Assembly (NCBI RefSeq): GCF_000737315.1
Contig: NZ_JMCB01000017.1
Location: 124,001-188,000 of the forward strand
Source of the DNA: Hyalangium minutum
Lineage (GTDB): Bacteria; Myxococcota; Myxococcia; Myxococcales; Myxococcaceae
Length of the DNA stretch: 64,000 nucleotides
Reading direction: 5' to 3'
Shown: positions 6,314-39,677 of the stretch, one piece after another
Numbering within the stretch: the stretch's first letter is position 1
How the letters are laid out: each line of letters opens with the position of its first letter
The notes under the pieces: model-generated
The model's input: the letters and a program-made list of their open reading frames with translations, nothing else
What the model was told of the DNA's origin: nothing
The model's database searches: none
Position numbers and translations under genes: made by a program

Positions 6314-7235
6314 GATTCTCGAGGCGCTCCTCTTCTCCACCCTGGACGCGGCCCCCGCGCTCATCTTCGCCACCCTCGGAGGCGTGCTCTCCGAGCGCGC
6401 GGGAGTGGTGAACGTCGGCGTGGAAGGCCAGATGCGCGCCGGGGCTTTCGTCGCCGCCGTGGCTGCCCTCTCCATGCCCACGCCCCTGGCTGTCATCGTG
6501 GGGATGGTGGCGGGCGCGGCGCTGGCCTCCGTGCACGGCTACCTGAGCATCCGCTGGCGCTCGGATCAGGTCGTCTCTGGCATGGCCATCAACCTGGTGG
6601 CGCTCGCCGGGGGCACCTTCCTCCTCGAGGCCCTGTTCAGCCCCAACGGAACCCCGCCCATCGAGCAGCTCCCGCGCTGGCAGCTGCCGCTGATCCAGGA
6701 CATCCCCCTGCTGCGGGCCCTCTCCGACCACCCCGGGCTGGCGTACCTCGCGCTGGTGCTGCCCTTCGTCTTCCACGCCGTGCTCCACCACACCCCGATC
6801 GGCCTGCGCCTGCGCGCCGTGGGCGAGAAGCCTCACGCCGTGGCCACCCTGGGCCTGAGCGTGCCGCTGCTGCGCTGGGGCGCGGTGCTCGGAGGCGGCC
6901 TGCTGGCGGGCCTGGGCGGCGCGGTGCTCTCGACTGCCGTGCTGGATCGCTTCGAGCAGCACACCCCTGCGGGCCTCGGCTTCATGGCCCTGGCCGCCAT
7001 GGTGTTCGGCCGGTGGACGCCCCTGGGCGCCTTCGGAGCCGCCTCCTTCTTCGCCTTCGGCAACGCCCTGCGCATCGGCCTGGCCTCCAGCGCCCCCGAG
7101 ATTCTGGATGTCATCCCCCAAGGCTTCCTGCTCGCCCTGCCCTACTTCCTGACGCTGCTCCTGCTGGCCATCCAGGGCCAACGCAGCAGTGCTCCTGCGG
7201 CGCTCGGCACCCCCTATGAGCAGGAGTCCCGCTAG
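6306..7235 (+). CDS. Nucleoside-type ABC transporter permease
   Basis: SERAGVVNVGVEG, GLRLRAVGE, GLGFMALAA..FGRW motifs. Confidence 0.92.
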   Translation: MLEILEALLFSTLDAAPALIFATLGGVLSERAGVVNVGVEGQMRAGAFVAAVAALSMPTPLAVIVGMVAGAALASVHGYLSIRWRSDQVVSGMAINLVALAGGTFLLEALFSPNGTPPIEQLPRWQLPLIQDIPLLRALSDHPGLAYLALVLPFVFHAVLHHTPIGLRLRAVGEKPHAVATLGLSVPLLRWGAVLGGGLLAGLGGAVLSTAVLDRFEQHTPAGLGFMALAAMVFGRWTPLGAFGAASFFAFGNALRIGLASSAPEILDVIPQGFLLALPYFLTLLLLAIQGQRSSAPAALGTPYEQESR

Positions 7236-8833: not shown

Positions 8834-10588
8834 TCAGGCAGGCTGCCCGCGATCACGCGCGAGTGCCACGAAGGCCTCCATGAGCGTCTGGAGCCGCGCC
8901 TCGGCCCGCGTGCGCGCCTGGGCCACGGACTCTCCAGCGGTCAGCGTCTCCTTCAGCTCGAAGTAGTACTTGATCTTGGGCTCGGTGCCCGAGGGCCGCA
9001 GGGTGACACGGTGGCCGCCCTCCAGCTCGTAGGCGATAACATTCGAGGCTGGCAGGGTGATGGGCTCGACCTTGCCGCCCGAGCGGGTCTCGCGCTTCTG
9101 GTAGTCCTTGGTGCTGCGGACGGCGTAGGCACCGATGCGCTCGGGGTGGGACTGGCGGAAGCCCTCCATGATGCGCGCGATGGTCTGCGCGCCCTCGGCG
9201 CCCTTGAAGGTGAAGTTGCGCTGGCCTCCGACGAAGAGGCCGTGCTTGCGCTGGATCTCCTCCAGGTAGCCAAGCACCGTCGTCCTGCGCGACTGGCACC
9301 ACGCTGCCAGGTCCGCGAACACCAGCGCCGCGCTGATGCCGTCCTTGTCGCGCACCACGGTGCCCACCGTATAGCCGAGCGCCTCTTCGTAGCCGAAGAC
9401 GAACTGGATGTTCTCGCTGCGCTCGCGTTCCAGCGCGCGGTTGGCGATCCACTTGAAGCCGGTGAGCACCTCGTCATACGCGGCGCCGAGGTCATGGGCG
9501 ATCTGCCCGAGCTGCACCGAGGAGACAATCGTGGTGGCCACGTGAGGCCGGGCCCGCTTCGTGCCCTGGGTGAGGAGGTAGTGGCCCAGCAGCACGCCCA
9601 CCTCGTTGCCGGTGAGCATGCGCAGTGAGCCCTGCGCGTCCCGCGTCATCACCGCGAGCCGGTCCGCATCCGGATCATTGGCGAGCACCAGCTCCGCCTT
9701 CTGGCGCTCGGCGGCGGCGGTGGACAGGTCCATCGCGCCAGGCTCCTCCGGGTTGGGGAAGCGCACCGTGGGGAAGGTGCCATCCGGCTGCTGCTGCTCG
9801 GCCACGACATGGAAGCGCGGAAAGCCCGCCGCCTTCATCGCCTTCTCCATCCACACGCCACCCACGCCATGCATCGCCGTGTAGACGATGGACAGCGTGT
9901 CCGAGCCCTTCCCGTACATCCGCAGTCCGAGGATGGCCTTCAGGTAGGCCTCACCAATGTCCTCGGAGAGATCCTTCCAGAGGCCCTTGGCACGGGCCTC
10001 GGCGGGGCTGAGCAGCTTCACCTGGTTGGCGGGCTCGACCGCGTCGATGGCGGCGGCAATGCCCTTGTCGTGCGGCGGGATGATCTGCGCGCCGTTGCCC
10101 CAGTAGACCTTGTAGCCGTTGTACTCGGGCGGGTTGTGGCTCGCGGTGACCATCACCGCTGCGGCGGCCTTCAGGTGCAGCGCGGCGAACGCCGTCAGCG
10201 GCGTGGGCGCCAACGTGGTGAACACCAGCGCCGGAATGCCCTCGGCGGCGAGCACGCCGGCAGTGTCCTCGGCGAACTCGGCGCTCATCCGCCGGCCATC
10301 GCGGCCCACCACCACGCCCCGGGTGGCGACGTCCGGCACCTGGGCCTTGAGGTAGCGCGCCAGCCCCGCCGTGGTGCGGCGCACCACCGCCCGGTTCATC
10401 CGGTTGGGCCCCGCGCCAATCACTCCGCGCAGGCCCGCCGTGCCGAACTCCAGATTGCCCGCGAAGCGGTCGGCCAGATCCGCCGTGTCCTCGCTGGCGA
10501 GCACGTTCGCCAGTTCCTGCGCAGTAACGGAGTCCGGATCCGCCTTGCGCCACGCTTCTGCCTGCTCCCTCAGCCCGGTGTTGCTCAT
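8834..10588 (-). CDS. PGM2-type alpha-D-phosphohexomutase-family enzyme; probable phosphopentomutase in this context
   Basis: FGTAGLRG, TASHNP phosphoserine loop, DPDADR metal loop, YEEALG, RPSGTEPK. Confidence 0.9.
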   Translation of the reverse strand: MSNTGLREQAEAWRKADPDSVTAQELANVLASEDTADLADRFAGNLEFGTAGLRGVIGAGPNRMNRAVVRRTTAGLARYLKAQVPDVATRGVVVGRDGRRMSAEFAEDTAGVLAAEGIPALVFTTLAPTPLTAFAALHLKAAAAVMVTASHNPPEYNGYKVYWGNGAQIIPPHDKGIAAAIDAVEPANQVKLLSPAEARAKGLWKDLSEDIGEAYLKAILGLRMYGKGSDTLSIVYTAMHGVGGVWMEKAMKAAGFPRFHVVAEQQQPDGTFPTVRFPNPEEPGAMDLSTAAAERQKAELVLANDPDADRLAVMTRDAQGSLRMLTGNEVGVLLGHYLLTQGTKRARPHVATTIVSSVQLGQIAHDLGAAYDEVLTGFKWIANRALERERSENIQFVFGYEEALGYTVGTVVRDKDGISAALVFADLAAWCQSRRTTVLGYLEEIQRKHGLFVGGQRNFTFKGAEGAQTIARIMEGFRQSHPERIGAYAVRSTKDYQKRETRSGGKVEPITLPASNVIAYELEGGHRVTLRPSGTEPKIKYYFELKETLTAGESVAQARTRAEARLQTLMEAFVALARDRGQPA

Positions 10589-10636: not shown

Positions 10637-11029
10637 TCAGGTGTAGTCGGTGAGCTTCTTGCGCGTGGGGCCGCCCTTGGGCTTGTCCTTCTTGCCCTGG
10701 CACTCCACGCAGTACTCCACATAGGGCATGGCCTTGAGCCGGCGGTACGGCAGCTCGTCGCCACACTCCTCGCACTCGCCGAAGCTGTCCGGATCGTTGC
10801 GCAGCTTGCCCAGCGCCTTCACCACCCGCGCCAGCACGCCGTCCATGTTCCGGTTCCGGCTGGACGCAATCGCCTGCATCATCTCGTTGAGCGGCTGCTC
10901 GTCCTCGTCGCCGCCCACCTTGCTGTCATCCGTCCGGTTCGGCTCGATCTTCGCTGGCGTCTTGCCGGTCAGCTCGGCATGCAGCGCCAGCAACAGCTGG
11001 CGCATCTCGTCTCGCTGGGCGTCCGTCAC
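10637..11029 (-). CDS. DksA/TraR-family C4 zinc-finger protein
   Basis: CEECG…RRLKAMP…CVECQ; N-terminal coiled coil. Confidence 0.88.
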   Translation of the reverse strand: MTDAQRDEMRQLLLALHAELTGKTPAKIEPNRTDDSKVGGDEDEQPLNEMMQAIASSRNRNMDGVLARVVKALGKLRNDPDSFGECEECGDELPYRRLKAMPYVEYCVECQGKKDKPKGGPTRKKLTDYT

Positions 11030-11053: not shown

Positions 11054-11992
11054 TCAGTACTTCCCGGTCGACTTCTGGCCGGTGATGATGGCCACGGAGG
11101 CCGAGGCACCGATGCGGTTGGCGCCCGCCTGGATCATCTTCATCGCGTCCTCGGCCGAGCGCACGCCACCCGAGGCCTTCACGCCCACGTCGTCACCCAC
11201 CACCTTGCGCATCAGCGCGATGTCCTCGGCGGTGGCGCCTCCGGAGCTGAAGCCCGTGGACGTCTTCACGAAGGCAGCCCCGGCAGCCTTGGAGAGCGCG
11301 CAGGCGCAGATCTTCTCCTCAAGGTTGAGCTGGCTCGTCTCCAGGATGACCTTGACCGGGTGCGGGCGGCTGGCCTCCACCACCATGGAGATGTCCTTGA
11401 GCACCAGCGCGTAGTCCTTCGCCTTCAGCGCGCCGATGTTGATCACCATGTCGATTTCCTTCGCGCCGCAGCGGATGGCCTCACGGGCCTCGAAGGCCTT
11501 GGCGCTGGGCAGCGCCGCCCCGAGCGGGAAGCCCACCACGGCGATGGGCACCGTCTTGGAGCCCGCCAGAATCCGGGCCGCCAGCGCCACGTTCACCGAG
11601 TTCACGCACACCGTGGCGAACCCGTGCTTCCGGGCCTCCTCGGACAGCTTGATGACCTCTTCGCGGCTGGCCTCGGGCTTGAGCAGCGTGTGGTCGATGT
11701 ATGGGGCGATGTCCGCGCTGGTCCGGATGGACTCCGGAGAGATACGGGCCGCGCCGGCCTTCACCGCGCCCACGGTGCCGCAGCTGTCCACGTTCGGGCA
11801 CACGTCGCACGAAGGCGCACATTCCTTGGAGGCCATAGCGTCCCCCGGCTTGCTGGCGCCAGTGGCCTCGCGGGCGGAGGGCCCGGGCGAGGTGGTGCAG
11901 GGCTGCTCCTTGCCTGCTCGGAGGGCTTGCATCCTACGGCGGACACGGTCAGCGATCTCGTCGACGACTTGGGTCATCTCGTCAGCGGCCAT
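11054..11992 (-). CDS. deoC: 2-deoxyribose-5-phosphate aldolase with about 90-aa N-terminal extension
   Basis: [45 protein letters not shown]; ATG 11992 (the 737-aa ORF upstream is antisense shadow). Confidence 0.95.
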
Positions 11993-12100: not shown

Positions 12101-13378
12101 GTGATGTCCTTCCCCCGGCTGCTCAGCGTCCTCCTCGTCCTCCTCACGGCCTTCTCCAGCGGGGCGCAGCCTGCCCCCGCTCGCCCGGCCCCGGGTAAAC
12201 CGCTCACGGTGTATTTCTTCGATGTGGGCCAGGGCGACGCGGCGCTCATCGTCTCGCCCACGGGCAAGACGGTGCTCATCGACGGAGGGCCGCCGGAGGC
12301 TGGGGAGCACCTGGCGTCCCGGATCAAGCAGCTCGTCCACGCGCCACTGGACCTGGTCATCCTCACGCATCCGCACCTGGACCACCTCGGGAGCCTGAGG
12401 GATGCGCTGCAGGCGGTGGGGGCCAAGCGCTTCATGGATCCGGGCTTTGACCACCCAAGCGAGGCCTATCGGAACCTGCTCGAGTTCGTGGGCAAAGAGG
12501 TGGACCAGGTGATGACGCCCGAGCCGAATCCGCAGGCCCCGGACACGTTCCTCACGGTGGGGCTCGGAGAGGGCGTGGTGCTCACGGTGTACTGGCCTCG
12601 CTTCCCGCGCGAGCCGTTCCTGAAGAACACGCGCTCGGATGCGAACTCCAACTCGATCGTGACGCGGCTCACCTATGGCAAGACGGCGTTCTTCTTCACG
12701 GGAGACAGTGAGAAGGACACCGAGGAGGCTCTGCTGCGCCAGCGCACGGACTTCACCTCCACTGTGCTGAAGGTGGCGCACCACGGCGGGAAGCACTCCT
12801 CCACGAAAGAGTTCCTGGAGGCGGTGAAGCCCAAGGCCGCCGTCATCTCCTGCAGCCATGACAACGAGTACGGCCACCCCACTGCGGAGGCGCTCGAGCG
12901 GCTGTCCGCCGTGGGCGCCAAGGTGTTCCGCACGGACCTGAACGGCGAAGTCCAGGCCGTGAGCGATGGCGTCAACGTCACCCTCCAGGCCGAGAAGGGC
13001 AGCCGCTCGAAGCTCACCGTTCCGGGCGAGGTGAAGCCGCTGGGGTCGAGTTCCAGCCCTGCTCCCGCGGCCGCCCCCACCCCGAAGCCCACTGGGGGCG
13101 CTGCCGCCACGCAGCCTCCGAACAAGCCCGGCGGTGAGACGGTGCAGACCGGGTACAAGCCTCCCGTCTCGGCTCCGGCGCCCGCTCCTGCTCCCAACAA
13201 GGCTCAGGCACCTGCTCCCTCGGCCGGTCAGAAGTTCGTGAGCCTCAAGGGCAGCGCGGTCTTCCACCGGGAGGACTGCGGCACCCTCAAGCGGGCGAAG
13301 ACAAAGGAGCGCACGGTGTACACATCCCGCGCCACCGCCGCGCGCGAGCGCCGGCCCGCGGAGGACTGCAAGCCATGA
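12101..13378 (+). CDS. Secreted ComEC/Rec2-type MBL-fold metallohydrolase (putative nuclease) with C-terminal Ada-like domain
   Basis: Signal peptide; DVGQGDA, THPHLDH, FTGD, KVAHHG, NEYGHP all intact; FHREDC…RPAEDCKP tail. Confidence 0.85.
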
Positions 13379-14724
13379 GCTCGCGCCTGTGGCCCTTGCT
13401 GGCCCTGCTGTTGGCCGCCGCGTGCAAGGAGCCTCCTCCGGCCCCGCCCGCGCCGCCGCCGGCCACGCGCCCCGCCGCTCCGAAGCACTTTTTGGGCAAC
13501 GCGCCGGACGGGAAGCTCCACATCTACTTCCTCGACGTGGGCCAAGGAGACTCCGCGCTCATCGTCTCGCCCGAGGGGCGCACCGTCCTCGTCGACACGG
13601 GCCCGGCCACGGCGGTGAACCACCTGGTGAACCGGCTGCCGGAGCTGCTCGCCGCGCGGCTGGATCTGGTGGTCCTCACCCACCCGTCGCCCGAACACTA
13701 CGGCACGCTGAGCGCGGTGCAGAAGATCGCGGATCCGCGCCGGCTGCTCGAGCCGCAGCTGCCCGAGACGCCCTCGGATTACGACGCCCTGCTCACGACG
13801 CTGGGCTCGTCGGGAGTGGAGATCTTCTCGCCCGCGCCCAACCCGGCCCAGCCTCAGGAGCTGACGCGCCTACCGCTGGGCAAGGGGGCGGAGCTGACGG
13901 TCCTGTGGCCGCGTGCGCCCACCGAGCCCTTGGTGCAGCTGCAGGGGGAGAAGCGCGCGCAGCATGAGGCCAACTCTATCGTCCTGCGCCTGACCTATGG
14001 GAAGACCTCGGTGCTCTTCGTGGGCGACGCTCGCGCTGAGACGGAGGCCGCGCTGCTGAAGCGTGGGGCGGAGCTGAACTCCACGCTCCTGAAGGTGGGT
14101 GGGCATGGGGCGGACTCGAGTACCACCCAGGAGTTCCTCCGGAAGGTGAAGCCGCAGGCGGCCATCATCAGCGTGGGCGGAGGCAACAAGCTCGGGGTTC
14201 CGGCGCAGGCCGTGCTGACCCGGCTGAAGGAGGAGAAGACGGCCCTCTTCCGCACCGATCAATACGGCGAGGTGCACGCGATGAGTGATGGCACGCAGTT
14301 CGTGCTCACCACGCAGAAGCTCGCGCCGGGCGAGGCCACCAACACCCAGCATGTCTTCGATGCCCCGGAGGAGCAGGCGCTGCAGGTTCCGACGCCTTCC
14401 GTACCCGTGGCCGAGAAGCCAGAGCCGAAGGTGGTGCCCGCGAAGGCCGTCGTCCCCAAGGCGAAGGAGGGCGAGGACCTCTCGCGGTTCGGCAAGGTGG
14501 TGGACATCGACACGCTGGGCGCCAAGGAGCACGGAGGCCGCCCGGAGAAGAAAGGGGCCCCAGCGGGAGGCGAGAAGTACTTCGCCAGCAAGAATCGGCC
14601 GATTTTCCACAAAGCGAGCTGCCGCAGCGTCAAACAGATCTCCGATGCGAACCTGCGTGAGTACAGCTCGCGCGAAGCTGCGCTAAAGGACAACAAGACG
14701 CCCGCCAACGACTGCAGGCCATGA
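13375..14724 (+). CDS. Lipoprotein ComEC/Rec2-type MBL-fold paralogue with degenerate metal site
   Basis: Lipobox LAAAC; DVGQGDS kept, but THPSPEH, KVGGHG and NKLGVP replace the metal-binding motifs; ATGA overlap with the previous gene. Confidence 0.82.
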
Positions 14725-14733
14725 GGATCGCCC

Positions 14734-14973
14734 ATGCGTAAGGCCACCGTGGACCGCTTCGAGGAAGAGCTGGCCGTGCTCATCGTCGACGGGCAGCAGG
14801 TGACCTGGCCCCGCGCCAACCTGCCTGCGGAGGTGCACGAGGGTGACGTGATCGATCTCGACACGGGGACGATCGACACGGAGGCCACCTCGGAGCTGCG
14901 CGAGCAGGTGCGGCAGGCCCGGAAGCAGGCGAAGAAGAAGAAGCCCGCGCCCACAGGCAACTTCGACCTCTGA
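14734..14973 (+). CDS. DUF3006-like small protein
   Basis: ATVDRFEEELAVL…LPAEVHEGDVI pattern; this family is commonly next to ComEC-like MBL genes. Confidence 0.8.
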   Translation: MRKATVDRFEEELAVLIVDGQQVTWPRANLPAEVHEGDVIDLDTGTIDTEATSELREQVRQARKQAKKKKPAPTGNFDL

Positions 14974-15111
14974 CGGGCGACTCCCTGGCAGGTTCGCTGC
15001 GTGCTCCTAAACCCCGAGGGCGGCATGGACACAGCGAGCCGAGGCCGCTGAAGCGGGGCCAGATCCGCGGGGTTCTTCTGACCGTGTCAGCAGGGTGTGA
15101 GGCTGGACCTC

Positions 15112-16533
15112 ATGCCCCGTCTTCTGTCCCTGGCGTTGCTTCTGACGCTGTCCACCTTCTTACTGGGCAGCGACTGCGGCGAGCATGAAGCCGTCTCGTT
15201 GGAGGAGCTGCGCCGGGACGTAGCGCCTCCCTTCGACTACAGCCTGTACTGCGACCCGTCGGGGACGCTGGTGGGAGACCGCTCCGCCGTGCTGTTGGTG
15301 CACCGCTCGGAGCACCTGGAGCGGGTGTACGCGGATGCACAAGCGGGTGATGCCAGGGCCCGGACGGTGTTCGCCCAGTTGGAGAGTGCGGTCCGGCTGA
15401 GAGGAGCAGGTCTGGCGAATGAGGCACTGGGGTTCACATGTGCCACGGCTCCCGCGTGCGCGCTGCAGTGGCACTTCCAGGAGGAGCTGATCCCCTCGCG
15501 CCAGGCCGGAGGCACGCGCCTGCGGGAGCTTCTGGCCGCCAGCTTCGAGCGCCAAGCAAAGCTCAAGGGCGTCAGCAACGCCGTCCTCAACGCAGCGCTG
15601 AACGTGCTGGTGGCTGGCACCGTACTGAAGCCAGGTGCAGGGGGAGCCGCAGAGGCCAAAGCCGCGACAGCCGAGGCCCGAGCCAGCTCACAGGAGGCGG
15701 GACAGCTGTCCCGCGAAGCCACCCTCGGACGGCAGCTCATGCCAAGCCATGAGGCACGCACGGCCGTCGACGAAACCGCGGCAGCGTTTGAAGCCCGGTT
15801 CGCCGAGGCAGAGGCGATAGAGCGAGGCCCCCGGTACTCGGTCCGCGTGGAGGAACTCGAACGCTACCGCCCTGCCTACAGCCAGCCTCCCTCAGGTGTA
15901 CCGGCAGATCATCCGCGCTGGAGCCGATACGTGACGTACTGGGAGCGCCGGTACGACGAACTCACGGGCAAACGGCCACTCCCTCCGGGCGAGTCAGAAG
16001 CCAAGCTGCCGTTGACGTGGAGGGGCTACGACGCCCTGCTCGGACGATTCCAACGCGCTCGGGAGTTCCAGCACGGAGTGACACAGGCCATGCAGCAGGA
16101 GGCTCGCGCAGCGGGTAGAGGACAGTTCCTGCCCCAGGAAATGAAACGCCCCCTGGTGGTGGACAACCTGGGTCTGGCGCGTGGAGAAGGAGCCCCCATC
16201 ACCTACGCGGACCAGTTCGTGGTGGATGAAGCCACCCTGGGCCCTGGTAAGCGCCCCCAGGTTCACACCTACAGTACCAAGCAGCACGACTTCTCTGGGA
16301 AGCGACCAGCAGACGCCTCGAAGCAGTTCCTGTCCGATGCCCAAGAAGCCATGACGAAGTATGGCGGAACAGTCGAAGTGCGCAGACGCGGTCACCCACT
16401 CTTCGGGCAGAAGGTCGTCGTCTCGCGGGTACACATCGTCTATGACGGAGAGAAGCTCGCTGGTGAAATCCGAGAAGCACTTTTTGAGCAAGCACAGGCC
16501 TCAGGAGTCGAACTCCACTTCCATGTCCCTTGA
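15112..16533 (+). CDS. Putative exported polymorphic toxin with restriction-endonuclease-like C-terminus
   Basis: Signal peptide ending in Cys (LLGSDC), central hydrophobic helix, YADQFVVD…YSTK motif, overlapping partner gene, less GC-biased codons than neighbours. Confidence 0.55.
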   Translation: MPRLLSLALLLTLSTFLLGSDCGEHEAVSLEELRRDVAPPFDYSLYCDPSGTLVGDRSAVLLVHRSEHLERVYADAQAGDARARTVFAQLESAVRLRGAGLANEALGFTCATAPACALQWHFQEELIPSRQAGGTRLRELLAASFERQAKLKGVSNAVLNAALNVLVAGTVLKPGAGGAAEAKAATAEARASSQEAGQLSREATLGRQLMPSHEARTAVDETAAAFEARFAEAEAIERGPRYSVRVEELERYRPAYSQPPSGVPADHPRWSRYVTYWERRYDELTGKRPLPPGESEAKLPLTWRGYDALLGRFQRAREFQHGVTQAMQQEARAAGRGQFLPQEMKRPLVVDNLGLARGEGAPITYADQFVVDEATLGPGKRPQVHTYSTKQHDFSGKRPADASKQFLSDAQEAMTKYGGTVEVRRRGHPLFGQKVVVSRVHIVYDGEKLAGEIREALFEQAQASGVELHFHVP

Positions 16534-17863
16534 TGACTGGAACAAGTCTGACGACCTCATGCTGGGTCTCCACTCTCCGCTCAACCCGTTTGAGCGCGGC
16601 TTCGAGGGGCTGGAGCCTGTGCTGGAGGCCATCGAGTCCCTTGCTCCGGAGATGCGCCCAGACACACTGGTCTTTCGGCGCAAGCGGAAGTACTCGCGGC
16701 AGGCGCTGCGTCAGCATTTCCACGAAACAGCCTTCGGCGACGATGTCCAAAGCCTGATGATGGTGCGGTCCAAGCCACCCGAAAGCAGGCTGACACTGAC
16801 AGGCGCGCTGCGCGAGCACGGCCCCGAATTCTCCGTGTCATTTCATTTGAGCCCCTTTTCCTTCTTCCGGGCTCCTGGCCATGCGGAGAAACGCGCAGAG
16901 GCTCTTCTGTCGTTCGTGCGCGCCCTGGCCACGCACCTTCCCCTCTCTCTAGGCAGAGGGCACAGCTTCGTTGATCTCTGCATGGGGCCAGACCCCCACA
17001 TGAAGGACAGGAGCCCCAGCCGCCCCATCCACGAGATCTTCTGGCTCAACGTCTTCGGGCCGCACCTCGTAGACAGGTTTGGCCGCCAGCGACTGCTCTC
17101 CACGCCCTGCGCCCATATGGAGGAGCTGCCCGGCGGTGCGTTCCTCTGGCTCACCCGCCCGACTCCCGCGGACTTCGACTCCGAGGAGGCCCGGCTCGCG
17201 CAGGCCCGTGCCTTGGTCCACTTGCGCCCCGAGCTCAGTCTGGAATCCACGCTTGCCACCCTGCGCCAGCGCTCCCTCGTCTTCACTCCCATCCCCATCC
17301 AATTCCACCCGGACGTGGCGGAGATCCTCTCGCAGGAAGTGGACTTCCGAGGCCTCTGGACCAAGCGCCAGAACGTCGAGCAGTTCAACCAGTACCGCCC
17401 TCCGCCTGTGTCCGAGTGGATCCCCGCCTCGCAGTGCCCTCCTCCAGATGTGGACGACGTCGCCAAGCGCATCGCCACCTACAGGAACATCTGCGCCGAG
17501 GAACTCATCGCCCTCTTCCACACGCCGGTCCCCGCGCTCTTGGACGGTACCCTCGACGCGCTGCCCCACCTGGACTGGTACCTGTGGCACCACCGCTGGG
17601 GGAAGAACCACACCCAGGATCAGCTCAACACCCTCCTCCCCGCGCTGGGAGGATGGCTCGGATACCAACTGGTAAACCTGCTCGGCGGCCGCTGGGTTCC
17701 TCGAAAGAATGTTTTCGAGTCCGCCGTCATCATCGGCGACCGGGCCTGGCTGCCGTTCCAGCGCGCGGCTCATGCCCTCAGCGGGCTCGATGCGCCGCTC
17801 GACTACTCGTGCACCCAGTTCTTCCGCGAGGCCCAGCGCTTCTCCCGCCAGCACACCCACTGA
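16523..17863 (+). CDS. Putative cognate immunity protein
   Basis: ATG 16523 overlaps the toxin end by 11 nt; FWLNVFG…GRQRLLSTP…EELPGG segment resembles myxobacterial immunity-type proteins. Confidence 0.55.
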   Translation: MSLDDWNKSDDLMLGLHSPLNPFERGFEGLEPVLEAIESLAPEMRPDTLVFRRKRKYSRQALRQHFHETAFGDDVQSLMMVRSKPPESRLTLTGALREHGPEFSVSFHLSPFSFFRAPGHAEKRAEALLSFVRALATHLPLSLGRGHSFVDLCMGPDPHMKDRSPSRPIHEIFWLNVFGPHLVDRFGRQRLLSTPCAHMEELPGGAFLWLTRPTPADFDSEEARLAQARALVHLRPELSLESTLATLRQRSLVFTPIPIQFHPDVAEILSQEVDFRGLWTKRQNVEQFNQYRPPPVSEWIPASQCPPPDVDDVAKRIATYRNICAEELIALFHTPVPALLDGTLDALPHLDWYLWHHRWGKNHTQDQLNTLLPALGGWLGYQLVNLLGGRWVPRKNVFESAVIIGDRAWLPFQRAAHALSGLDAPLDYSCTQFFREAQRFSRQHTH

Positions 17864-17881
17864 AGCTGCTCACACCAGCGC

Positions 17882-19093
17882 TCAGGCCGTGGACCGGGCG
17901 CGGGGCAGCAGCAGCACGAGCAGGACCGCGCTCAGCGCCGCCAGTATCCCCGCCGTGAGGAAGGCCACCGAGCTGCCCCAGCGCGTCCACATCGCCCCGA
18001 AGAGCAGCCCTGCCGCCAGCGAGGCGCCTCCCGCCAGTCCGTTGTAGAGGCCAAAGGCCCGTCCTCGTGCCGCCGCTGGCACCAGCGAGGCGAGCAGTGA
18101 CTTCTCCGCGCCCTCGGAGAGCGCGTGGTACAGCCCATAGAGACCCATGACCACGAGCGTGCCCCTCAGCCCGTGCACTTGCGAGAGCGCCAAATAGCTC
18201 AGCGCGTACAGCAGCCACCCTGCCAGCACCAGCCGCGAGGCCCCCAGCCGATCCGCCAGCCAGCCTGCCGGATAGGACACTCCCGCCTTCACCGCGTGCA
18301 GCATCAGCCACGCCATCGGCAGCCACTCCGGGCGCGCCCCTTCCTCGCTCAGCTTCAGAAGAATGAACGCATCCGTCGAGTTGGCGATCCCGAAGAGCAC
18401 CACCGGTACCAAGTAGTACGCCAGCCGCCTCGGCACAGGCGCCTGCTTCTGGGCCGAGCCCCCTGCCTGAACCAGCACCCGAGGTGGCTCGGAGGCCAGC
18501 AGGATCGCCAGCACGCCCAGCACGCCCGGCACGACTGCCGCGAGAAATACCTGCTCCACCCGCAGCCCTGCTGCCACCAGCACGATGGCCACCAGCGAGC
18601 CGAGCGCCGCTCCCGCATGGTCCATGCCCCGGTGAAAGCCGAAGGCCCGGCCTCGGGCACCCTCGGGCACGGTGTGCGCGATGATCGCGTCCCTCGGGGT
18701 GCTCCGCACGCCCTTGCCCACCCGGTCCAGCGAGCGGATGACGAGCGGCTGCCACACGGCCGTCACGAAAGCCATCATCGGCCGCGCGAAGCAGGACACG
18801 CCGTAGCCCAGGAGCACCAACGGCTTCAGCCGCCGCGCCCGATCCGACCACACCCCAGACTGGTACTTGAGCAGCGCGGAGATGAGATCCGCCAGTCCCT
18901 CCATCGCCCCCAGCAGCAGCGGCGCCGCGGGGAGGCGCGCGGCCAGGAACGCCGGCAGCAGCGGGAAGATCATCTCGCTGCTCACATCCGTCAGCAGCGA
19001 CACCACGCCAAGCACCACCACGGTGCGCGGCAGCCTTCCGGACACTCCGGCTCCCTGGGTCTGACCTTCCTTCACGTGCCTGCTCTTCTCCAT
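17882..19093 (-). CDS. MFS transporter
   Basis: About 12 hydrophobic helices; WSDRARR, DRVGKGVRSTPRD, WLADRLG motifs. Confidence 0.9.
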   Translation of the reverse strand: MEKSRHVKEGQTQGAGVSGRLPRTVVVLGVVSLLTDVSSEMIFPLLPAFLAARLPAAPLLLGAMEGLADLISALLKYQSGVWSDRARRLKPLVLLGYGVSCFARPMMAFVTAVWQPLVIRSLDRVGKGVRSTPRDAIIAHTVPEGARGRAFGFHRGMDHAGAALGSLVAIVLVAAGLRVEQVFLAAVVPGVLGVLAILLASEPPRVLVQAGGSAQKQAPVPRRLAYYLVPVVLFGIANSTDAFILLKLSEEGARPEWLPMAWLMLHAVKAGVSYPAGWLADRLGASRLVLAGWLLYALSYLALSQVHGLRGTLVVMGLYGLYHALSEGAEKSLLASLVPAAARGRAFGLYNGLAGGASLAAGLLFGAMWTRWGSSVAFLTAGILAALSAVLLVLLLPRARSTA

Positions 19094-19105
19094 GCCCCAG
19101 GACCG

Positions 19106-19552
19106 CTAGGCGGTCGCCTTCATCGTGATGTGCACCGGCGTCGGGTTCGCCAGGTTGTCACTCACCGGGCAGCGCGCCTCGATCTCGCTCTTGAGCTTCG
19201 CGATCTGCTCCAGGCTGGCGGTGCTCTTGATGCGAATCTCCACCTCCAGCGACTGGTATCCGGCGCGGACGTTGCGGTCGGTGCCGGCGAACTTCGCGGG
19301 ATCGAGCGAGCCCCGCACCGTGATCTCCGTCCCCGACACCGGGATGCCCAGCTCCTTGGCGATGAAGAACGTCATGTAGTTCAGGCAGCCCGCGTGCGCG
19401 GCCAGGATGAAGTCCAGCGGGCTCGGCGCTCCATTGCGGCCGCCCAGCTCCGGAGGCTCGTCCATGAAGATCTTGAAAGCATGCACCTCGGTGGTGCTGC
19501 GGGCCATGCTCTCGCCGGTGGTGCGCACCTCTCCGGTGTACAGATTCGACAT
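19106..19552 (-). CDS. OsmC/Ohr-family protein
   Basis: DEPPELGG..GAPSPLD, AGC and RCPVS cysteines; GAAGGAG RBS. Confidence 0.88.
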   Translation of the reverse strand: MSNLYTGEVRTTGESMARSTTEVHAFKIFMDEPPELGGRNGAPSPLDFILAAHAGCLNYMTFFIAKELGIPVSGTEITVRGSLDPAKFAGTDRNVRAGYQSLEVEIRIKSTASLEQIAKLKSEIEARCPVSDNLANPTPVHITMKATA

Positions 19553-19639
19553 GGGGCTGTCTCCTTCGGGAGTGATGGGATGGCTCGCCACCCCACGGTG
19601 AGACCACAGCATGCCGCCTGAGCTCCCGCCGAGCAGCAG

Positions 19640-20308
19640 CTAGCGGCGCGGTCCGAGGCCCGCCTTCTTGCGCGCCTCGAGCAGCTTCTGCACGTCCGCG
19701 GGCGCCAGCGGCTGCACCGTCCCCAGCGAGCGTGCAGCCATGAGGATCTTCGCGTAGTGCTCCACCAGCTCCATCCGGAGCAGGGCCTGCGTCAGATCCT
19801 CACCCAGCGTGATGACGCCGTTGCCCGACAGCAGAAACGCGTCGTACTCGGAGGCGGCGCTCTCCACGCGCTTCGCGCCCTCGGGATCCTTGGGCATCGC
19901 GCGCTGCAGCGTGGGCACGCGATCTCCCAGCGACACCACCATCTCCGGCAGCGCGATGGGCGACAGCTCCTGCCCCACCAGCCCGAACGCCGTGGCCACC
20001 GGCGGGTGCGCGTGCAGCACCACCTGAGCCTCCGGCCGCCCCCGGTACACCGCCAGGTGCAGGTCCAGCTCGCCGAACGGCTTGCGCCGCCCCTCCAGCA
20101 CCTTGCCCTGCGGATCCACCACCAGCAGCGACGCGTCGTCGATGTCCCGCTTGGATACCGCCGTGCACGTAATCAAGAACCGCTCGCCCTTGAGGCGCAC
20201 GGACACGTTGCCGTCGTGGTTGGCCACCCAGCCGTTCGCGTGCAGACGGTGGGAGGTGCTCACCACGTCCGCCCGCAGCTTCGGCAGCGGCACGAAGCCC
20301 TCGCTCAC
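19640..20308 (-). CDS. Class II aldolase/adducin-family protein with altered active site
   Basis: GNVSVR, ELDLHLAVY, HAHPP; LLSGNG where FucA-type enzymes have LxxHG. Confidence 0.85.
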   Translation of the reverse strand: MSEGFVPLPKLRADVVSTSHRLHANGWVANHDGNVSVRLKGERFLITCTAVSKRDIDDASLLVVDPQGKVLEGRRKPFGELDLHLAVYRGRPEAQVVLHAHPPVATAFGLVGQELSPIALPEMVVSLGDRVPTLQRAMPKDPEGAKRVESAASEYDAFLLSGNGVITLGEDLTQALLRMELVEHYAKILMAARSLGTVQPLAPADVQKLLEARKKAGLGPRR

Positions 20309-20574
20309 GCATCCACCTCGTCCACCACGCCGACGATCAGCGAGCGGATGGGCAGCGTCTTGTCGCCGAGGATCTGCCGCACCCCGCCGCCCTCGCGCAT
20401 GACCAGCACCACGTCCCCCGGCCCCGCCGAGGAGGTGTGGTCCACCGCGATGAAGCTCTTGCCCAGGGGCTGCTGCTTCTCATCCAGCGGCTGCACCACC
20501 ATCAGCTTCCGGCCCGCGAAAGCCGGGTGCTTCAAGGTGGAGGTGACGCTGCCCAGCACCTTGCACAGGTTCAT
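20305..20574 (-). CDS. EutN/CcmL-family BMC vertex (BMC-P) protein
   Basis: KVLGSVTST.K…KLMVVQP…AVD…AGPGDVVLV…IVGVVD; ATGA overlap. Confidence 0.92.
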   Translation of the reverse strand: MNLCKVLGSVTSTLKHPAFAGRKLMVVQPLDEKQQPLGKSFIAVDHTSSAGPGDVVLVMREGGGVRQILGDKTLPIRSLIVGVVDEVDA

Positions 20575-20834
20575 ACGTCCACCGAGTCCACGATGCCGAC
20601 AATCGCCGCATCCACCGGCACGAACCACGGATCCAAAGCGAGCGCCGCCTCGCGGCTGCCCACCAGGTACACCAGCTCGCCCCGGCCCGCGGACACCGTG
20701 TCCACGGCCACCTCGGGGCTGCCCATGGGCTCCCGCTGGTGATCCAACGGCTGGACCACGAGGAGCCGCTTGCCCTCGAGGCCCTCATACTTCTGCTCGC
20801 AGACCACCGTGCCGAGGACGCGTCCCAGGTACAT
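20571..20834 (-). CDS. EutN/CcmL-family BMC vertex (BMC-P) protein
   Basis: MYLGRVLGTVV…KRLLVVQP…AVDTVSAGRGELV…GSREA…DAAIVGIVD. Confidence 0.93.
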   Translation of the reverse strand: MYLGRVLGTVVCEQKYEGLEGKRLLVVQPLDHQREPMGSPEVAVDTVSAGRGELVYLVGSREAALALDPWFVPVDAAIVGIVDSVDV

Positions 20835-20843
20835 AGGCGCCTG

Positions 20844-22691
20844 TTACATCGCTCCCGAGGTGAGGACCAGGGGGATCTGCAGCTCGACCTCCTCGGTGCC
20901 GTCATCCAGGGTGAACTTGGGGAACACCATCCGCTTGGCGCTCTTCTTGATGCAGTCGCCCACCGGCGAGGTATCCAGCTCCTTGCGGTCCAGCTTCGTG
21001 TCCTTCACCACGCCCGAGGTGCCCACCGTCGTCACGAGCGTCACCTTCCCGCCCTTGAACTTGGGGTTCTTGCGCAGCTCCGTCTCCACGCAGCCCTGGA
21101 AGGCGCCCTGGGACTTCTCCACCACCTTCATCACGTCCTCGGCCGGAGGCCCACCGCTGCCCGCCGCGTCTTGGGCGGCGACTTCGGCGTCCTTGCGCAC
21201 CGCAGGGGCCACGTCCGTCTTCGACGCGTCCCCGAGGAGCTGCTGCAGTTCCTCGGCGGACTTGCCCGTCTCCGGCGTCGCGGGCTTCTCTTCCGCGGAT
21301 CCCCCGGGTTTCGGCGCGGTGCCACCCTGCGCCGGCTTCTTCTCTGGAGCCGTGGGCGTGGGAGCCGGGGTGGGCGCCGGCTTCTTGTTCCCGAGCAGCA
21401 GGTCCTTCAGCTCGCTGCGGCCCTCGCCCGAGAACAGCCAGGACTTCTCCACCGGCTTGCCCTGGGCGTCCACCGTCTTCATCTTCGGCACGAAGTTCAG
21501 CGTGTCCAGCGCGAACACCCCGCCGCCGATGAGCAGGATGGGCAGCATGATGAACAGCGCCACCTTCCACGCCGGGTTGCGGCGGGTGACGCCCGACTTC
21601 TTCATGAAGTAGCGCGTGTCCTCCACCGGCTTCTTGGTGTCCGGCTTGCTGCCTCGCACCGACGCCAGCGGATCCGGGCTCTCGCCCACGGCCGCCAGAG
21701 GCGACTCGCTGTCGGGCGGCGGCTCGTTCTTGTCGGGCAGATCCAGATCCGAGAACAGATCATCGCCCATCCCCGCCTTGCTGGCCGCGCCATTCGAGCG
21801 GGACTGCTTCTGCGCCCGGGGCTGATCCGGGGCCGGCTCATCCCACGCAGGCTGATCCTCCTGCCCCTGGGCCTGCTGCTCGTCCCACTGCTGCTGCTCG
21901 TCCTGCCCCTGGGCCTGCTGCTCATCCCACTGCTGCTGCTCGTCCTGCCCCTGGGCCTGCTGGCCGTCCCACGCGGGCTGATCCTCCTGCGGGGGCTCCT
22001 CCCACTGGGCCTGCTGGCGCTGCGACTGGCGCTGCGGCTGCGCGGCGGCGGGCGGATCCAGATCCCACGGCTCGCGGGCCGCAGGCGCCTGCCCCACCGT
22101 GGTGGGCACATCCTCCCAGGCGTTGTCCTCCTGCTGCGGCGCAGGGGTGTTGGTGCGCTGGCCCCGCACGGCCACGGTGGCGGGCTCGGGCGGCAGCGCG
22201 GGCGGAGGCTCGGGCGGTGCGGCAGGAGGCGCGAACAGGCCCGCCAGCTCGGGGATGTCCGAGCCGCGCTTCCAGTCCGCCATGCCCTGCTGCCAGAAGA
22301 AGCTGCGCGCGTTGATGGCGCCGCTCTCCATGAGCCCTTGCAGGCCGGCCTCGTCCAGTGGGCCTTCCTGCTTGCTCTTCACCATCACGAACCAGGGAGC
22401 CGCGGCCGGGCGCGCCGGGGCGGCCTTGGTGGGCTCGTCCTCCCACGGGTTGGCGCTGGCCGGAGCCGCCGCGGGCTCCGGAGCGGCCGCAGCCATGGCG
22501 CGCTCCTGCTCGCGGATCCGCTCCACGTCGGCGAGAGACACCACGCGGGTGCTCTCTTCCATCTCCATGGGCGGGCCCTGGACGGAGATGACGTTCTGGC
22601 AGTTCTTACAACGGACCTTGACGGTCTTCCCGCGGACCTTCTCGTCCGCGATGGAGTACCGCCTCTGGCAATTGTCACAAGAGAAGTTCAA
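20844..22691 (-). CDS. GltJ/AgmX-like protein: zinc ribbon, GYF domain, low-complexity linker, TM helix, TonB_C-like C-terminal domain
   Basis: CDNC…VRCKNC; EGP…FWQQGMADWK; TM segment VALFIMLPILLIGGGVFAL; C-terminal FQGCVE…GDCI…FPKF. Confidence 0.8.
   Translation of the reverse strand: MNFSCDNCQRRYSIADEKVRGKTVKVRCKNCQNVISVQGPPMEMEESTRVVSLADVERIREQERAMAAAAPEPAAAPASANPWEDEPTKAAPARPAAAPWFVMVKSKQEGPLDEAGLQGLMESGAINARSFFWQQGMADWKRGSDIPELAGLFAPPAAPPEPPPALPPEPATVAVRGQRTNTPAPQQEDNAWEDVPTTVGQAPAAREPWDLDPPAAAQPQRQSQRQQAQWEEPPQEDQPAWDGQQAQGQDEQQQWDEQQAQGQDEQQQWDEQQAQGQEDQPAWDEPAPDQPRAQKQSRSNGAASKAGMGDDLFSDLDLPDKNEPPPDSESPLAAVGESPDPLASVRGSKPDTKKPVEDTRYFMKKSGVTRRNPAWKVALFIMLPILLIGGGVFALDTLNFVPKMKTVDAQGKPVEKSWLFSGEGRSELKDLLLGNKKPAPTPAPTPTAPEKKPAQGGTAPKPGGSAEEKPATPETGKSAEELQQLLGDASKTDVAPAVRKDAEVAAQDAAGSGGPPAEDVMKVVEKSQGAFQGCVETELRKNPKFKGGKVTLVTTVGTSGVVKDTKLDRKELDTSPVGDCIKKSAKRMVFPKFTLDDGTEEVELQIPLVLTSGAM
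21860..21961. repeat. 42-bp tandem repeat (about 2.4 copies) encoding QAQGQDEQQQWDEQ
   Basis: Units start at 21860, 21902 and 21944. Confidence 0.9.
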
Positions 22692-22764
22692 GAGAGCGAC
22701 CGATGCGCGCTGGGGAAACGAGTGGGGGATGCTACTCCAGCTTCTTCGAGTGCAAAACGTCCGG

Positions 22765-22793
22765 TTGACTCCGCCGCACGGGCCAACTATGCA
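22765..22793 (+). promoter_or_regulatory. Sigma-70-type promoter candidate for the FYDLN gene
   Basis: TTGACT-N17-TATGCA. Confidence 0.55.
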
Positions 22794-22838
22794 CCCGCCC
22801 CTTGGGTTTCAGCTTCCCTCGTTTCAGAAGGTGGCGAG

Positions 22839-23126
22839 ATGCCGGCGAAGGACCTCGGGAACAAATACGTCTGTTTCAAGTGCTCGACGAAGTTCTATGA
22901 CATGAAAAAGCCCGATCCGCTCTGTCCTAAATGCGGAGCGGACCAGCGCGAGAGCCCGGCCCTCAAGGCGCCGACGGAGGGACGCCGTGGCCGGCTGGCC
23001 GCTGCTCCCAAGGTCATCGAGCCGATCGAGCCCGAAGAGCCCGCCGCTTCCGAGGAGGACGAGGAGGATCTCGACTCCTTCGACGACGAGCCCGTGGAGG
23101 GGGCGGAAGAGGAGGAGGACATCTAG
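22839..23126 (+). CDS. TIGR02300/FYDLN acid-domain protein
   Basis: DLGNKYVCFKCSTKFYDMKK…CPKCG with acidic tail. Confidence 0.9.
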   Translation: MPAKDLGNKYVCFKCSTKFYDMKKPDPLCPKCGADQRESPALKAPTEGRRGRLAAAPKVIEPIEPEEPAASEEDEEDLDSFDDEPVEGAEEEEDI

Positions 23127-23212
23127 CGGGGTGGGTCTTGCCGGCCCCAGCGCGTCCTCGACTGCCTCTCCGGGCTCCTCCTCACGAGGAGCCCGCTCCA
23201 TCCGGTGGCTGT

Positions 23213-23371
23213 TCAGTTATCGGACACCAGCTTCAACTCGCCGACGATCCGACGGATCTGCTCGTAGAGCGTCGGCCCCATGGTCTGCATGCCCTCCGGG
23301 CGCGTCGCCACCGGCTTCGGGGCCTCCGTGCGGACCGCTGGGTCATGTTGAGTCTTCTTCTTGTCTTGCAT
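23213..23371 (-). CDS. Small hypothetical protein (52 aa)
   Basis: GGAGG RBS before ATG 23371; no recognised motif. Confidence 0.45.
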   Translation of the reverse strand: MQDKKKTQHDPAVRTEAPKPVATRPEGMQTMGPTLYEQIRRIVGELKLVSDN

Positions 23372-23482
23372 GGGCTCCACCCTCCCCACCTGTTGCTGGG
23401 TCCACTGCATAGCAATTTTTCCGCCAAGGTAAAATGGCCCATCCGCTTTCCGACATTCCGGGGGGTTGTGGATCAGCCCCCC

Positions 23483-23543
23483 AAAACCCCCTGTCCGGGT
23501 TTAGAACTGTTCCGGGAATCCTGTGCCGGAATCGGACAGGGGG
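23483..23543 (-). terminator. Intrinsic terminator candidate after the cupredoxin-like lipoprotein gene
   Basis: 11-bp inverted repeat (23487-23497 with 23533-23543), inner 6-bp stem, then TTTT on the minus strand. Confidence 0.5.
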
Positions 23544-23565
23544 GAGTCGTAGCTCACCCACCCGG

Positions 23566-24345
23566 TCATTTCACGGCGTCTGAGGCCCAGCTCTGCTCCA
23601 GGCGGACGGTCTCTCCGGCCTTCACGGTGAGGGGCTTGGAGGCCTCGGGCAGCCGGTCGTGCCAGAGCACCACGGTGTGGGTGCCCTCGGGGACTTCCAG
23701 GCGGAAGTGGCCCTGGGAATCCGTGGTGGTGAAGTAGGGATGATCAAAGGTGCGCACCACCGCGCGCATCCACGGGTGCACGTCGCACTTCACCTGGACT
23801 GTACCGGGAGTGGCGGGCAGGGGCTTCTTCAGGGTCATCCCCTCCAGCGGCATGGCCACGTTGAAGACGGGCTGGGCTCCGGCCGCGGCGCGCACGTTGT
23901 GCATGACGGGGTCCGAGTTGCGCACCTCCAGCGCCGTGCCCGCGCGGGCCGCCAGGGCGGGCGGATCATAGGAGCACTTCTTCTGGTCCAGGAGGGCGGG
24001 CGGCGCGGTGACTCCCTCGGCTGGCAGCGAGGCCCCGTCCGCGAGCGACACCACCACGTGCGCGAGCGCGCCACCCTCTCCCACGGTGAGGGAGCGATCG
24101 GGCACCTTGTCGCCACAGGTGGCCAAGACACTGGCGGTGGTGTCGAACTGCGCCGGGGTGGGCGGGGTGCCAGTCAGCCGCACCGTCCCCTCGATGAACC
24201 CCTTCCCGGCGGGCGCGGCCGTGGCTCGCTGCGGCATGGGGGTGGGAGTGGAAGCAGGCGGAGCGGCGTTGGACTCCGAGGAACCACGGCAGGCCGTTGC
24301 CAACGCCAGGAGCGCGAGCGCGCACAGGTGCAAGGTGGGTTTCAC
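23566..24345 (-). CDS. Lipoprotein with cupredoxin-like core and carboxypeptidase-regulatory-like beta domains
   Basis: Lipobox LATAC; HNV and CDVHPWM motifs. Confidence 0.7.
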   Translation of the reverse strand: MKPTLHLCALALLALATACRGSSESNAAPPASTPTPMPQRATAAPAGKGFIEGTVRLTGTPPTPAQFDTTASVLATCGDKVPDRSLTVGEGGALAHVVVSLADGASLPAEGVTAPPALLDQKKCSYDPPALAARAGTALEVRNSDPVMHNVRAAAGAQPVFNVAMPLEGMTLKKPLPATPGTVQVKCDVHPWMRAVVRTFDHPYFTTTDSQGHFRLEVPEGTHTVVLWHDRLPEASKPLTVKAGETVRLEQSWASDAVK

Positions 24346-35310: not shown

Positions 35311-35314
35311 GCAC

Positions 35315-39268: not shown

Positions 39269-39664
<396 letters not shown>

Positions 39665-39677
39665 TTTTTTCCCCTTC

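Follow-up and report, generated by a model that had tools for sequence, protein, structure and literature searches.

The bacterial microcompartment (BMC) type HO (Haliangium ochraceum-type) was defined by Sutter et al. (2021, PMC8217296) from 41 loci, mostly of Deltaproteobacteria. Its shell serves as the principal model for work on microcompartment structure and engineering, and its native function has been called enigmatic (PMC8217296). The main locus is described as encoding a single BMC-H hexamer, one BMC-P vertex protein, BMC-T trimers (BMC-Tdp and BMC-Ts) and an aldehyde dehydrogenase with an N-terminal encapsulation peptide. In type I HO, which includes that of H. ochraceum, there is also a satellite locus of two BMC-P genes and an aldolase gene, its separation from the main locus being the defining trait of the type, and the aldolase, of family PF00596, is borne on the satellite in 24 of the 30 type I loci. 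The three BMC-P proteins, which fall in the grey, the orange and one other BMC-P clade, make up a typical triplet that is divided between the main and satellite loci (all from PMC8217296). We discuss here a stretch of 64 kb from Hyalangium minutum DSM 14724T, for which the genome accession is JMCB00000000 (PMC5441343). The stretch is positions 124001-188000 of JMCB01000017.1 (GCA_000737315.1), to which it was found identical over 20,669 bases compared; it is referred to throughout as the window, and it includes a module of two BMC-P genes and an aldolase-family gene. Judged by its sequence this module is very probably the satellite of a type I HO microcompartment, a feature already recorded for the strain itself in published work (PMC8217296), only a few of the details given below being new.

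The module comprises three genes, for which we use the names P1, P2 and aldolase.

20571-20834, minus strand: P1, BMC-P paralogue 1 (EutN/CcmL vertex protein, 87 residues; PF03319 EutN_CcmL, E-value 2.8e-27)
20305-20574, minus strand: P2, BMC-P paralogue 2 (89 residues from the ATG; PF03319, E-value 7.2e-25)
19640-20308, minus strand: class II aldolase/adducin-family protein (222 residues, GTG start; PF00596, E-value 1e-40)

Both P1 and P2 cover the PF03319 profile in full (1-83 of 83), and their matches in the PDB are EutN/CcmL/CsoS4 structures, among them the H. ochraceum shell pentamer in 5v74. The best for P1 is the EutN/CcmL pentamer 4i7a (E-value 1.5e-16), and P2 matches CcmL (E-value 6e-12). 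With a full-length fold and homology to solved pentamers the two are predicted vertex pentamer proteins, and being only 41% identical to each other they are distinct paralogues. The three genes are chained by start/stop overlaps of 4 nucleotides, as read directly from the DNA: the P1/P2 junction is GTATGA, in which the P2 start overlaps the P1 stop as ATGA, and the P2/aldolase junction is GCGTGA, in which the aldolase start overlaps the P2 stop as GTGA.

P1 and P2 are probably two of the three vertex paralogues of the HO triplet, and they are translationally coupled to the aldolase-family protein. When they are set beside the main-locus BMC-P proteins of two HO loci (L082 and L086), pairwise identity between P1, P2 and main-locus proteins is 33-44% (33-36% for P2 against the main-locus proteins), as against 66% between the two main-locus proteins, and this fits three paralogue classes, the classes being read here from pairwise identity. 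No BMC-H or BMC-T gene was found in the window: six-frame tblastn over its whole length gave no real match to the H. ochraceum BMC-H (HO-5815, the query sequence being verified against the PDB) or to PduA, with a best E-value of 0.98, nor to an HO BMC-Tdp, BMC-Ts and aldehyde dehydrogenase or E. coli RpiB, with a best E-value of 0.47, and Pfam scans of the other large genes of the window found nothing related to microcompartments. However a main locus has been catalogued for the strain, since in the supplementary trees of PMC8217296 the Hyalangium DSM 14724 proteins DB31_6364 (a PduT-like BMC-Ts of 188 residues) and DB31_6369 (a CsoS1D-like BMC-Tdp of 212 residues) are both given as 'HO (main)'. 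Canonical type I HO main loci in other genomes and metagenomes had the order Tdp-H-P-aldehyde dehydrogenase-T in all those inspected. They came from the best 120 of about 8000 matches to the H. ochraceum BMC-H, and were in metagenomes or unrelated metagenome-assembled genomes (MAGs) only; among these best 120 the accession prefixes of the main-locus contigs did not overlap with those of the 80 satellite-bearing genomes treated below.

An initial annotation of the window had described two distinct EutN/CcmL genes and a class II aldolase gene chained by 4-nucleotide overlaps, with no BMC-H or BMC-T gene in the window, and the Pfam matches, the junctions and the tblastn searches (best E-values 0.47-0.98 for the four shell queries) all agree with that description. 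It had also proposed that the facet proteins are encoded elsewhere and that the locus resembles a P-P-aldolase satellite of H. ochraceum, and both proposals accord with the published catalogue. It had named two outcomes that would count against it: that there be no other shell genes in the genome, which is contradicted by the main-locus listing, and that the pentamers cluster with a microcompartment type unrelated to the deoxyribose-phosphate aldolase DeoC (see below), which was not what we found.

To look at conservation, one genome per species was scanned with the aldolase, giving 80 loci, all of them Myxococcota-like and none of them from the genome of the window itself, and gene order in these loci was mapped by tblastn for up to 10 kb per side. 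The nearest relatives in this species-representative set are Hyalangium versicolor and Hyalangium-like MAGs, in which the aldolase is 90-93% identical. Of the 77 loci whose upstream sequence is long enough, 75 have orthologues of P1 and P2 immediately 5' of the aldolase, those of P1 being 64-98% identical, and a match to BMC-H was found in none of the 80 within the mapped flanks. For close relatives the ratio of nonsynonymous to synonymous substitution rates (dN/dS) against the window genes is 0.03-0.4, with medians of 0.27 for P1, 0.35 for P2 and 0.34 for the aldolase. These values are well below 1, and with the P-P-aldolase arrangement kept in 75 of 77 loci they indicate that the genes are selected for and are not relics.

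In the case of the aldolase-family protein no NCBIfam equivalog cut-off was reached. The metal site of FucA is made up of E73, H92, H94 and H155, and the first three are kept as E80, H99 and H101, all invariant, while the position of the third zinc-ligand histidine (H155 in FucA) is occupied by asparagine (Asn163) in 77 of 78 orthologues, so that the protein does not have the FucA-like site of one glutamate and three histidines. The only orthologue of the 78 with histidine at position 163 is the most distant, from Bradymonadales (L081). We considered whether the orthologue with histidine might be that of a locus without P1 and P2, and rejected this, as the histidine is in L081 while L063, which has no P1 and P2, has asparagine. 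Among 150 representatives at 50% identity there are 28 with asparagine and 113 with histidine at this position. The protein is best described from these residues as a member of the Pfam superfamily and not as a conventional class II aldolase. Neither end of it is extended, and it is without the C-terminal tail of 30-100 additional residues seen in many homologues, a tail that might be an encapsulation peptide. The H. minutum protein could be a second sugar-phosphate lyase yielding an aldehyde, or else an accessory protein. The replacement of the third zinc-binding histidine by asparagine is one of the new details, although a minor one of modest weight.

The other enzyme to be considered in relation to the module is DeoC.

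11054-11992, minus strand: deoxyribose-phosphate aldolase DeoC (312 residues with the start corrected as described here; TIGR00126 deoC), candidate cargo

The deposited call is of 292 residues, but the frame runs on upstream to an ATG 20 codons earlier (11933-11992, minus strand), and the annotated start halves a conserved amphipathic helix. The N-terminus upstream of the 292-residue call (MAxxD...) is kept in orthologues from 17 related loci, and it is likewise conserved across 47 aligned homologues from the databases, which for the most part are called at 297-327 residues and cover 99-100% of the longer form. As the match of the core to TIGR00126 (E-value 1.4e-78) extends over residues 95-303, there is an N-terminal extension of 94 residues. 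An encapsulation peptide is a terminal amphipathic helix of about 18 residues with a poorly structured linker to the enzyme. The AlphaFold2 model of DeoC, built with the alignment of 47 homologues, has a helix at residues 2-29, a disordered stretch at 30-74 (predicted local distance difference test score below 50) and then the TIM barrel. Hydrophobic moment within the protein is highest in the N-terminal segment, at 0.67 compared with 0.62 for the encapsulation peptide of an HO aldehyde dehydrogenase, and the pattern of the helix resembles that of the HO aldehyde dehydrogenase peptides, which are IRELVERVVERL in L082 and IEEIVAKVLERL in L086. The predicted N-terminus of DeoC therefore has both the helix and the linker of an encapsulation peptide. 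The linker also has five cysteines that are invariant in the 47 sequences, C32 and then C58-x3-C62-x2-C65-x5-C71, and is otherwise variable. Residues 32-71 matched no Pfam family and are left disordered by AlphaFold2, and a metal or iron-sulphur site is possible. The five cysteines are the second of the new details, and again a minor one of modest weight.

The relationship of DeoC to the module is best seen by considering the genes around them, which are as follows.

20844-22691, minus strand: zinc-ribbon and GYF protein (Zn-GYF) with an AgmX/PglI C-terminal domain, GltJ-like (615 residues; PF13717, PF14237)
17882-19093, minus strand: major facilitator superfamily (MFS) transporter (PF07690, E-value 4.7e-30), a recurrent neighbour 3' of the aldolase
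15097-17863, plus strand: two large genes lacking a Pfam match, placed between those for the MFS transporter and the beta-lactamase-fold proteins
12101-14973, plus strand: two metallo-beta-lactamase-fold proteins (signal or lipoprotein-like N-termini) and a DUF3006 protein
10637-11029, minus strand: DksA/TraR-type zinc-finger protein between DeoC and the mutase (PF01258, E-value 7e-13)
8834-10588, minus strand: the mutase, a PGM/PMM-family phosphohexomutase-like protein (584 residues; PF02878, PF02879, PF02880, PF00408)

In the window 7.6 kb separate the aldolase stop from DeoC, which is downstream, and the interval contains seven genes: an OsmC-like gene, that for the MFS transporter, the two opposite-strand genes with no Pfam match, that for the DUF3006 protein and those for the two metallo-beta-lactamase-fold proteins. 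The two genes at 15097-17863 seem to belong to DNA that was inserted between aldolase and DeoC in the lineage of Hyalangium, and the metallo-beta-lactamase-fold proteins would, if they were secreted nucleases, fit a DNA-scavenging context. In 18 related loci DeoC shares the strand of the aldolase and lies 0.1-6.6 kb downstream from it; 11 of these are among the 42 loci for which the downstream sequence extends to 9 kb or more, and 7 are on shorter contigs. Several have the order aldolase, MFS, DeoC, mutase, and the MFS orthologue is immediately 3' of the aldolase (and ahead of any DeoC) in L013, L022, L028, L043, L059 and others. In L078 DeoC with its encapsulation-peptide-like N-terminus (EP-DeoC) comes directly after the aldolase, and in L021 the genes run contiguously as Zn-GYF, P1, P2, aldolase, EP-DeoC, DksA-like, mutase, with an open reading frame similar in size to the DksA-like gene between DeoC and the mutase.

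The locus from one Myxococcaceae MAG (L063:1-4433) has the Zn-GYF gene, aldolase, DeoC and mutase in direct succession. P1 and P2 are missing from their usual place ahead of the aldolase, and DeoC in L063 lacks the N-terminal extension. This locus is a natural comparison in which there are neither vertex genes nor peptide.

Extensions resembling encapsulation peptides had already been noted on DeoC orthologues in HO genomes, and nucleic-acid catabolism proposed (PMC8217296). We lean, by a modest degree, towards DeoC being cargo of the HO microcompartment, on the strength of the sequence and of the structural model. This was also the suggestion of the initial annotation, which gains from the helix revealed by the correction of the start and from the synteny with the satellite in relatives. 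It had in addition called DeoC nearby: the gene is indeed present on the minus strand, but is not adjacent to the module.

At lower coordinates than the mutase are genes for the probable uptake and the cleavage of nucleosides.

1110-2426, minus strand: thymidine/pyrimidine-nucleoside phosphorylase (NF004490, E-value 4e-174, above cut-off; PF00591, PF02885, PF07831)
2474-7235, plus strand: Bmp/PnrA-type ATP-binding cassette (ABC) transporter, with binding lipoprotein, ATPase and two permeases (PF02608, E-value 5e-67; PF00005; PF02653 twice)

Of the 18 related loci in which DeoC was matched, 15 have the mutase after it, and from this context we infer that it is a phosphopentomutase; the Bmp/PnrA-type transporter is presumably for nucleoside uptake. 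The presence of mutase, phosphorylase and transporter beside DeoC makes for a plausible path from nucleoside to deoxyribose-5-phosphate. The transporter would import nucleosides, the phosphorylase would cleave them to give deoxyribose-1-phosphate, and the mutase would convert this to deoxyribose-5-phosphate. The encapsulated aldehyde dehydrogenase would then take acetaldehyde to acetyl-CoA, with the aldehyde thereby confined by the shell. Among aldehyde dehydrogenases the HO enzyme is nearest to those of types SPU5 and SPU7, which are DeoC-based (PMC8217296).

The locus as a whole is probably best explained by the combination of satellite identity, to which we give the most weight, a main locus elsewhere in the genome and a deoxyribose route. 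More tentatively, the satellite in its ancestral compact form may have been a signature-enzyme operon such as that of L021 (P-P-aldolase-like, EP-DeoC, DksA-like and mutase), the HO organelle then being one for catabolism of nucleosides and deoxyribose-5-phosphate, with the five-cysteine linker as a metal or redox site and with the His-to-Asn aldolase as a partner in a non-canonical role.

A number of points weigh against the overall explanation of satellite, main locus and deoxyribose route. To our knowledge no experiment shows formation of an HO microcompartment, or its contents, in any native host. In H. minutum itself there are the 7.6 kb and seven genes between aldolase and DeoC, and about three quarters of the relatives with enough flanking sequence have no DeoC within 9-10 kb. 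RpiB, the signature partner of DeoC in the SPU types, was not found in the window by tblastn with the E. coli protein. The aldolase, having neither an encapsulation peptide nor the third zinc-ligand histidine, may be neither cargo nor a conventional aldolase, and the five invariant cysteines of the DeoC linker are explained by no encapsulation-peptide model. The main locus of H. minutum is known here from the supplementary trees of PMC8217296. Variants of HO that have PduS/T homologues and EutBC are included in the type, and the Hyalangium main locus has a PduT-like BMC-Ts (PMC8217296), so that other substrates are possible.

Of the other explanations, the one that survives best retains the HO organelle and gives it a substrate other than deoxyribose-5-phosphate. 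The signature enzyme would then be the class II aldolase-family protein, with some other sugar phosphate as its substrate in the manner of the PVM, GRM5 and ACI types, or an ethanolamine or PduS/T module would be the source of aldehyde, and the DeoC extension would serve another purpose, for example as a metal- or redox-binding regulatory domain. In every locus it is the aldolase and not DeoC that has translational coupling to the vertex genes, a DeoC within 10 kb is missing from most relatives, the invariant cysteines suggest a role for the extension beyond targeting, and the EutBC and PduS/T modules of some HO genomes and the PduT-like BMC-Ts of the Hyalangium main locus (PMC8217296) point in the same direction. 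However an aldolase with no encapsulation peptide and a non-canonical metal site is not easily seen as the signature enzyme, the DeoC helix does resemble the HO aldehyde dehydrogenase peptides, the extension is missing from DeoC in L063, which is the one locus without P1 and P2, and the HO aldehyde dehydrogenase groups with those of DeoC-based SPU types (PMC8217296). We regard a different substrate as rather unlikely.

Much less probable is that P1 and P2 function outside a closed shell, for example as oligomeric partner or scaffold of the Asn-variant aldolase-like protein, with which they would make up a two-component module separate from the HO organelle. The tight translational coupling of the two to the aldolase across the clade would be accounted for, and multiple BMC-P paralogues have been said to hint at an additional functional role (PMC8217296), but in type II HO loci the P-P-aldolase module is within the main shell operon (PMC8217296), P1 and P2 match pentamer-forming EutN/CcmL proteins over their full length, and there is no direct evidence for such a role. 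That the three genes are orphan relics of a lost microcompartment with no shell left to cap is very improbable, for although there is no hexamer or trimer gene in the window, and none within 10 kb in the 80 related loci, a main locus is catalogued for the strain and distance from it is what defines type I HO (PMC8217296), and the frames are intact, the coupling is kept in 75 of 77 loci and dN/dS is well below 1.

Apart from the deoxyribose route, which we continue to prefer, there are some other features of the locus and the window to be recorded. The Zn-GYF protein scored 61 bits with NF033768, above cut-off, and was below cut-off for the GltJ model; it has a long Pro/Gln-rich region, and the stop of its gene is 9 nucleotides before the P1 start. 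The gene is 5' of P1 in most related loci, and is directly 5' of the aldolase in L063, where P1 and P2 are missing. It is thus a conserved neighbour, and this may reflect shared transcription or merely inherited gene order. Neither promoter-like sites nor minus-strand terminators turned up in a scan of 17500-23600, which thus gives no operon boundaries; Rfam gave no RNA family near the P1-P2-aldolase locus. Further away in the window are the following.

32977-36928, plus strand: AAA/STAND-like ATPase and DUF2357/PD-(D/E)XK nuclease protein, with 62-65% G+C as against about 68%
39271-39666, plus strand: bacterial RNase P RNA class A (RF00010, 298 bits)

The pair of genes at 32977-36928 is McrBC-like and is possibly an acquired defence island.

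The finding of the P-P-aldolase module in itself adds nothing to the published catalogue, as the strain is already in it. What we add is modest, namely the corrected DeoC start with its encapsulation-peptide-like helix, the synteny of DeoC with the satellite and the two sequence oddities. The published nucleic-acid hypothesis is tightened by the helix, by the adjacency of DeoC and satellite in some relatives and by the neighbouring cluster for nucleoside uptake and cleavage, and is now readily testable. If the reading based on the L021-like operon is true, it would assign the enigmatic HO microcompartment to nucleoside and deoxyribose-5-phosphate catabolism, and would add two undescribed features, the five-cysteine linker and the remodelled zinc site of the aldolase-family protein.

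With regard to the known microcompartment types, the SPU BMCs have in common with the system discussed here a DeoC-type aldolase proposed as source of acetaldehyde for an encapsulated aldehyde dehydrogenase, and nucleic-acid breakdown products as predicted substrate. However SPU loci have DeoC (PF01791) and RpiB (PF02502) inside the main shell locus, whereas in H. minutum DeoC is outside the shell operon, 7.6 kb off, and RpiB is not in the window; the gene to which the vertex genes are coupled is instead one for a class II aldolase-family protein. The ACI, PVM and GRM5 types resemble the H. minutum locus in that a PF00596 protein is encoded with shell proteins, and ACI has in addition a BMC-P triplet and a satellite aldehyde dehydrogenase. 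The ACI aldolase carries an encapsulation peptide, and the PVM and GRM5 aldolases have assigned substrates, fuculose phosphate or rhamnulose phosphate, in contrast to the H. minutum protein, which has no extension, no equivalog cut-off reached and no third histidine ligand. In type II HO, the main locus has the same P-P-aldolase module, but in an operon with BMC-H, BMC-T and aldehyde dehydrogenase, while the window and the 80 related loci have no BMC-H within 10 kb. The closest match is the type I HO satellite (PMC8217296), with which the locus shares two adjacent PF03319 genes and a PF00596 aldolase gene away from the main locus, the BMC-P triplet and a myxobacterial host, and from which there is no essential difference. 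To the picture of type I HO we can add that in this clade the aldolase has asparagine for the third zinc-ligand histidine and no C-terminal extension, and that in some relatives the satellite runs on into EP-DeoC and the mutase.

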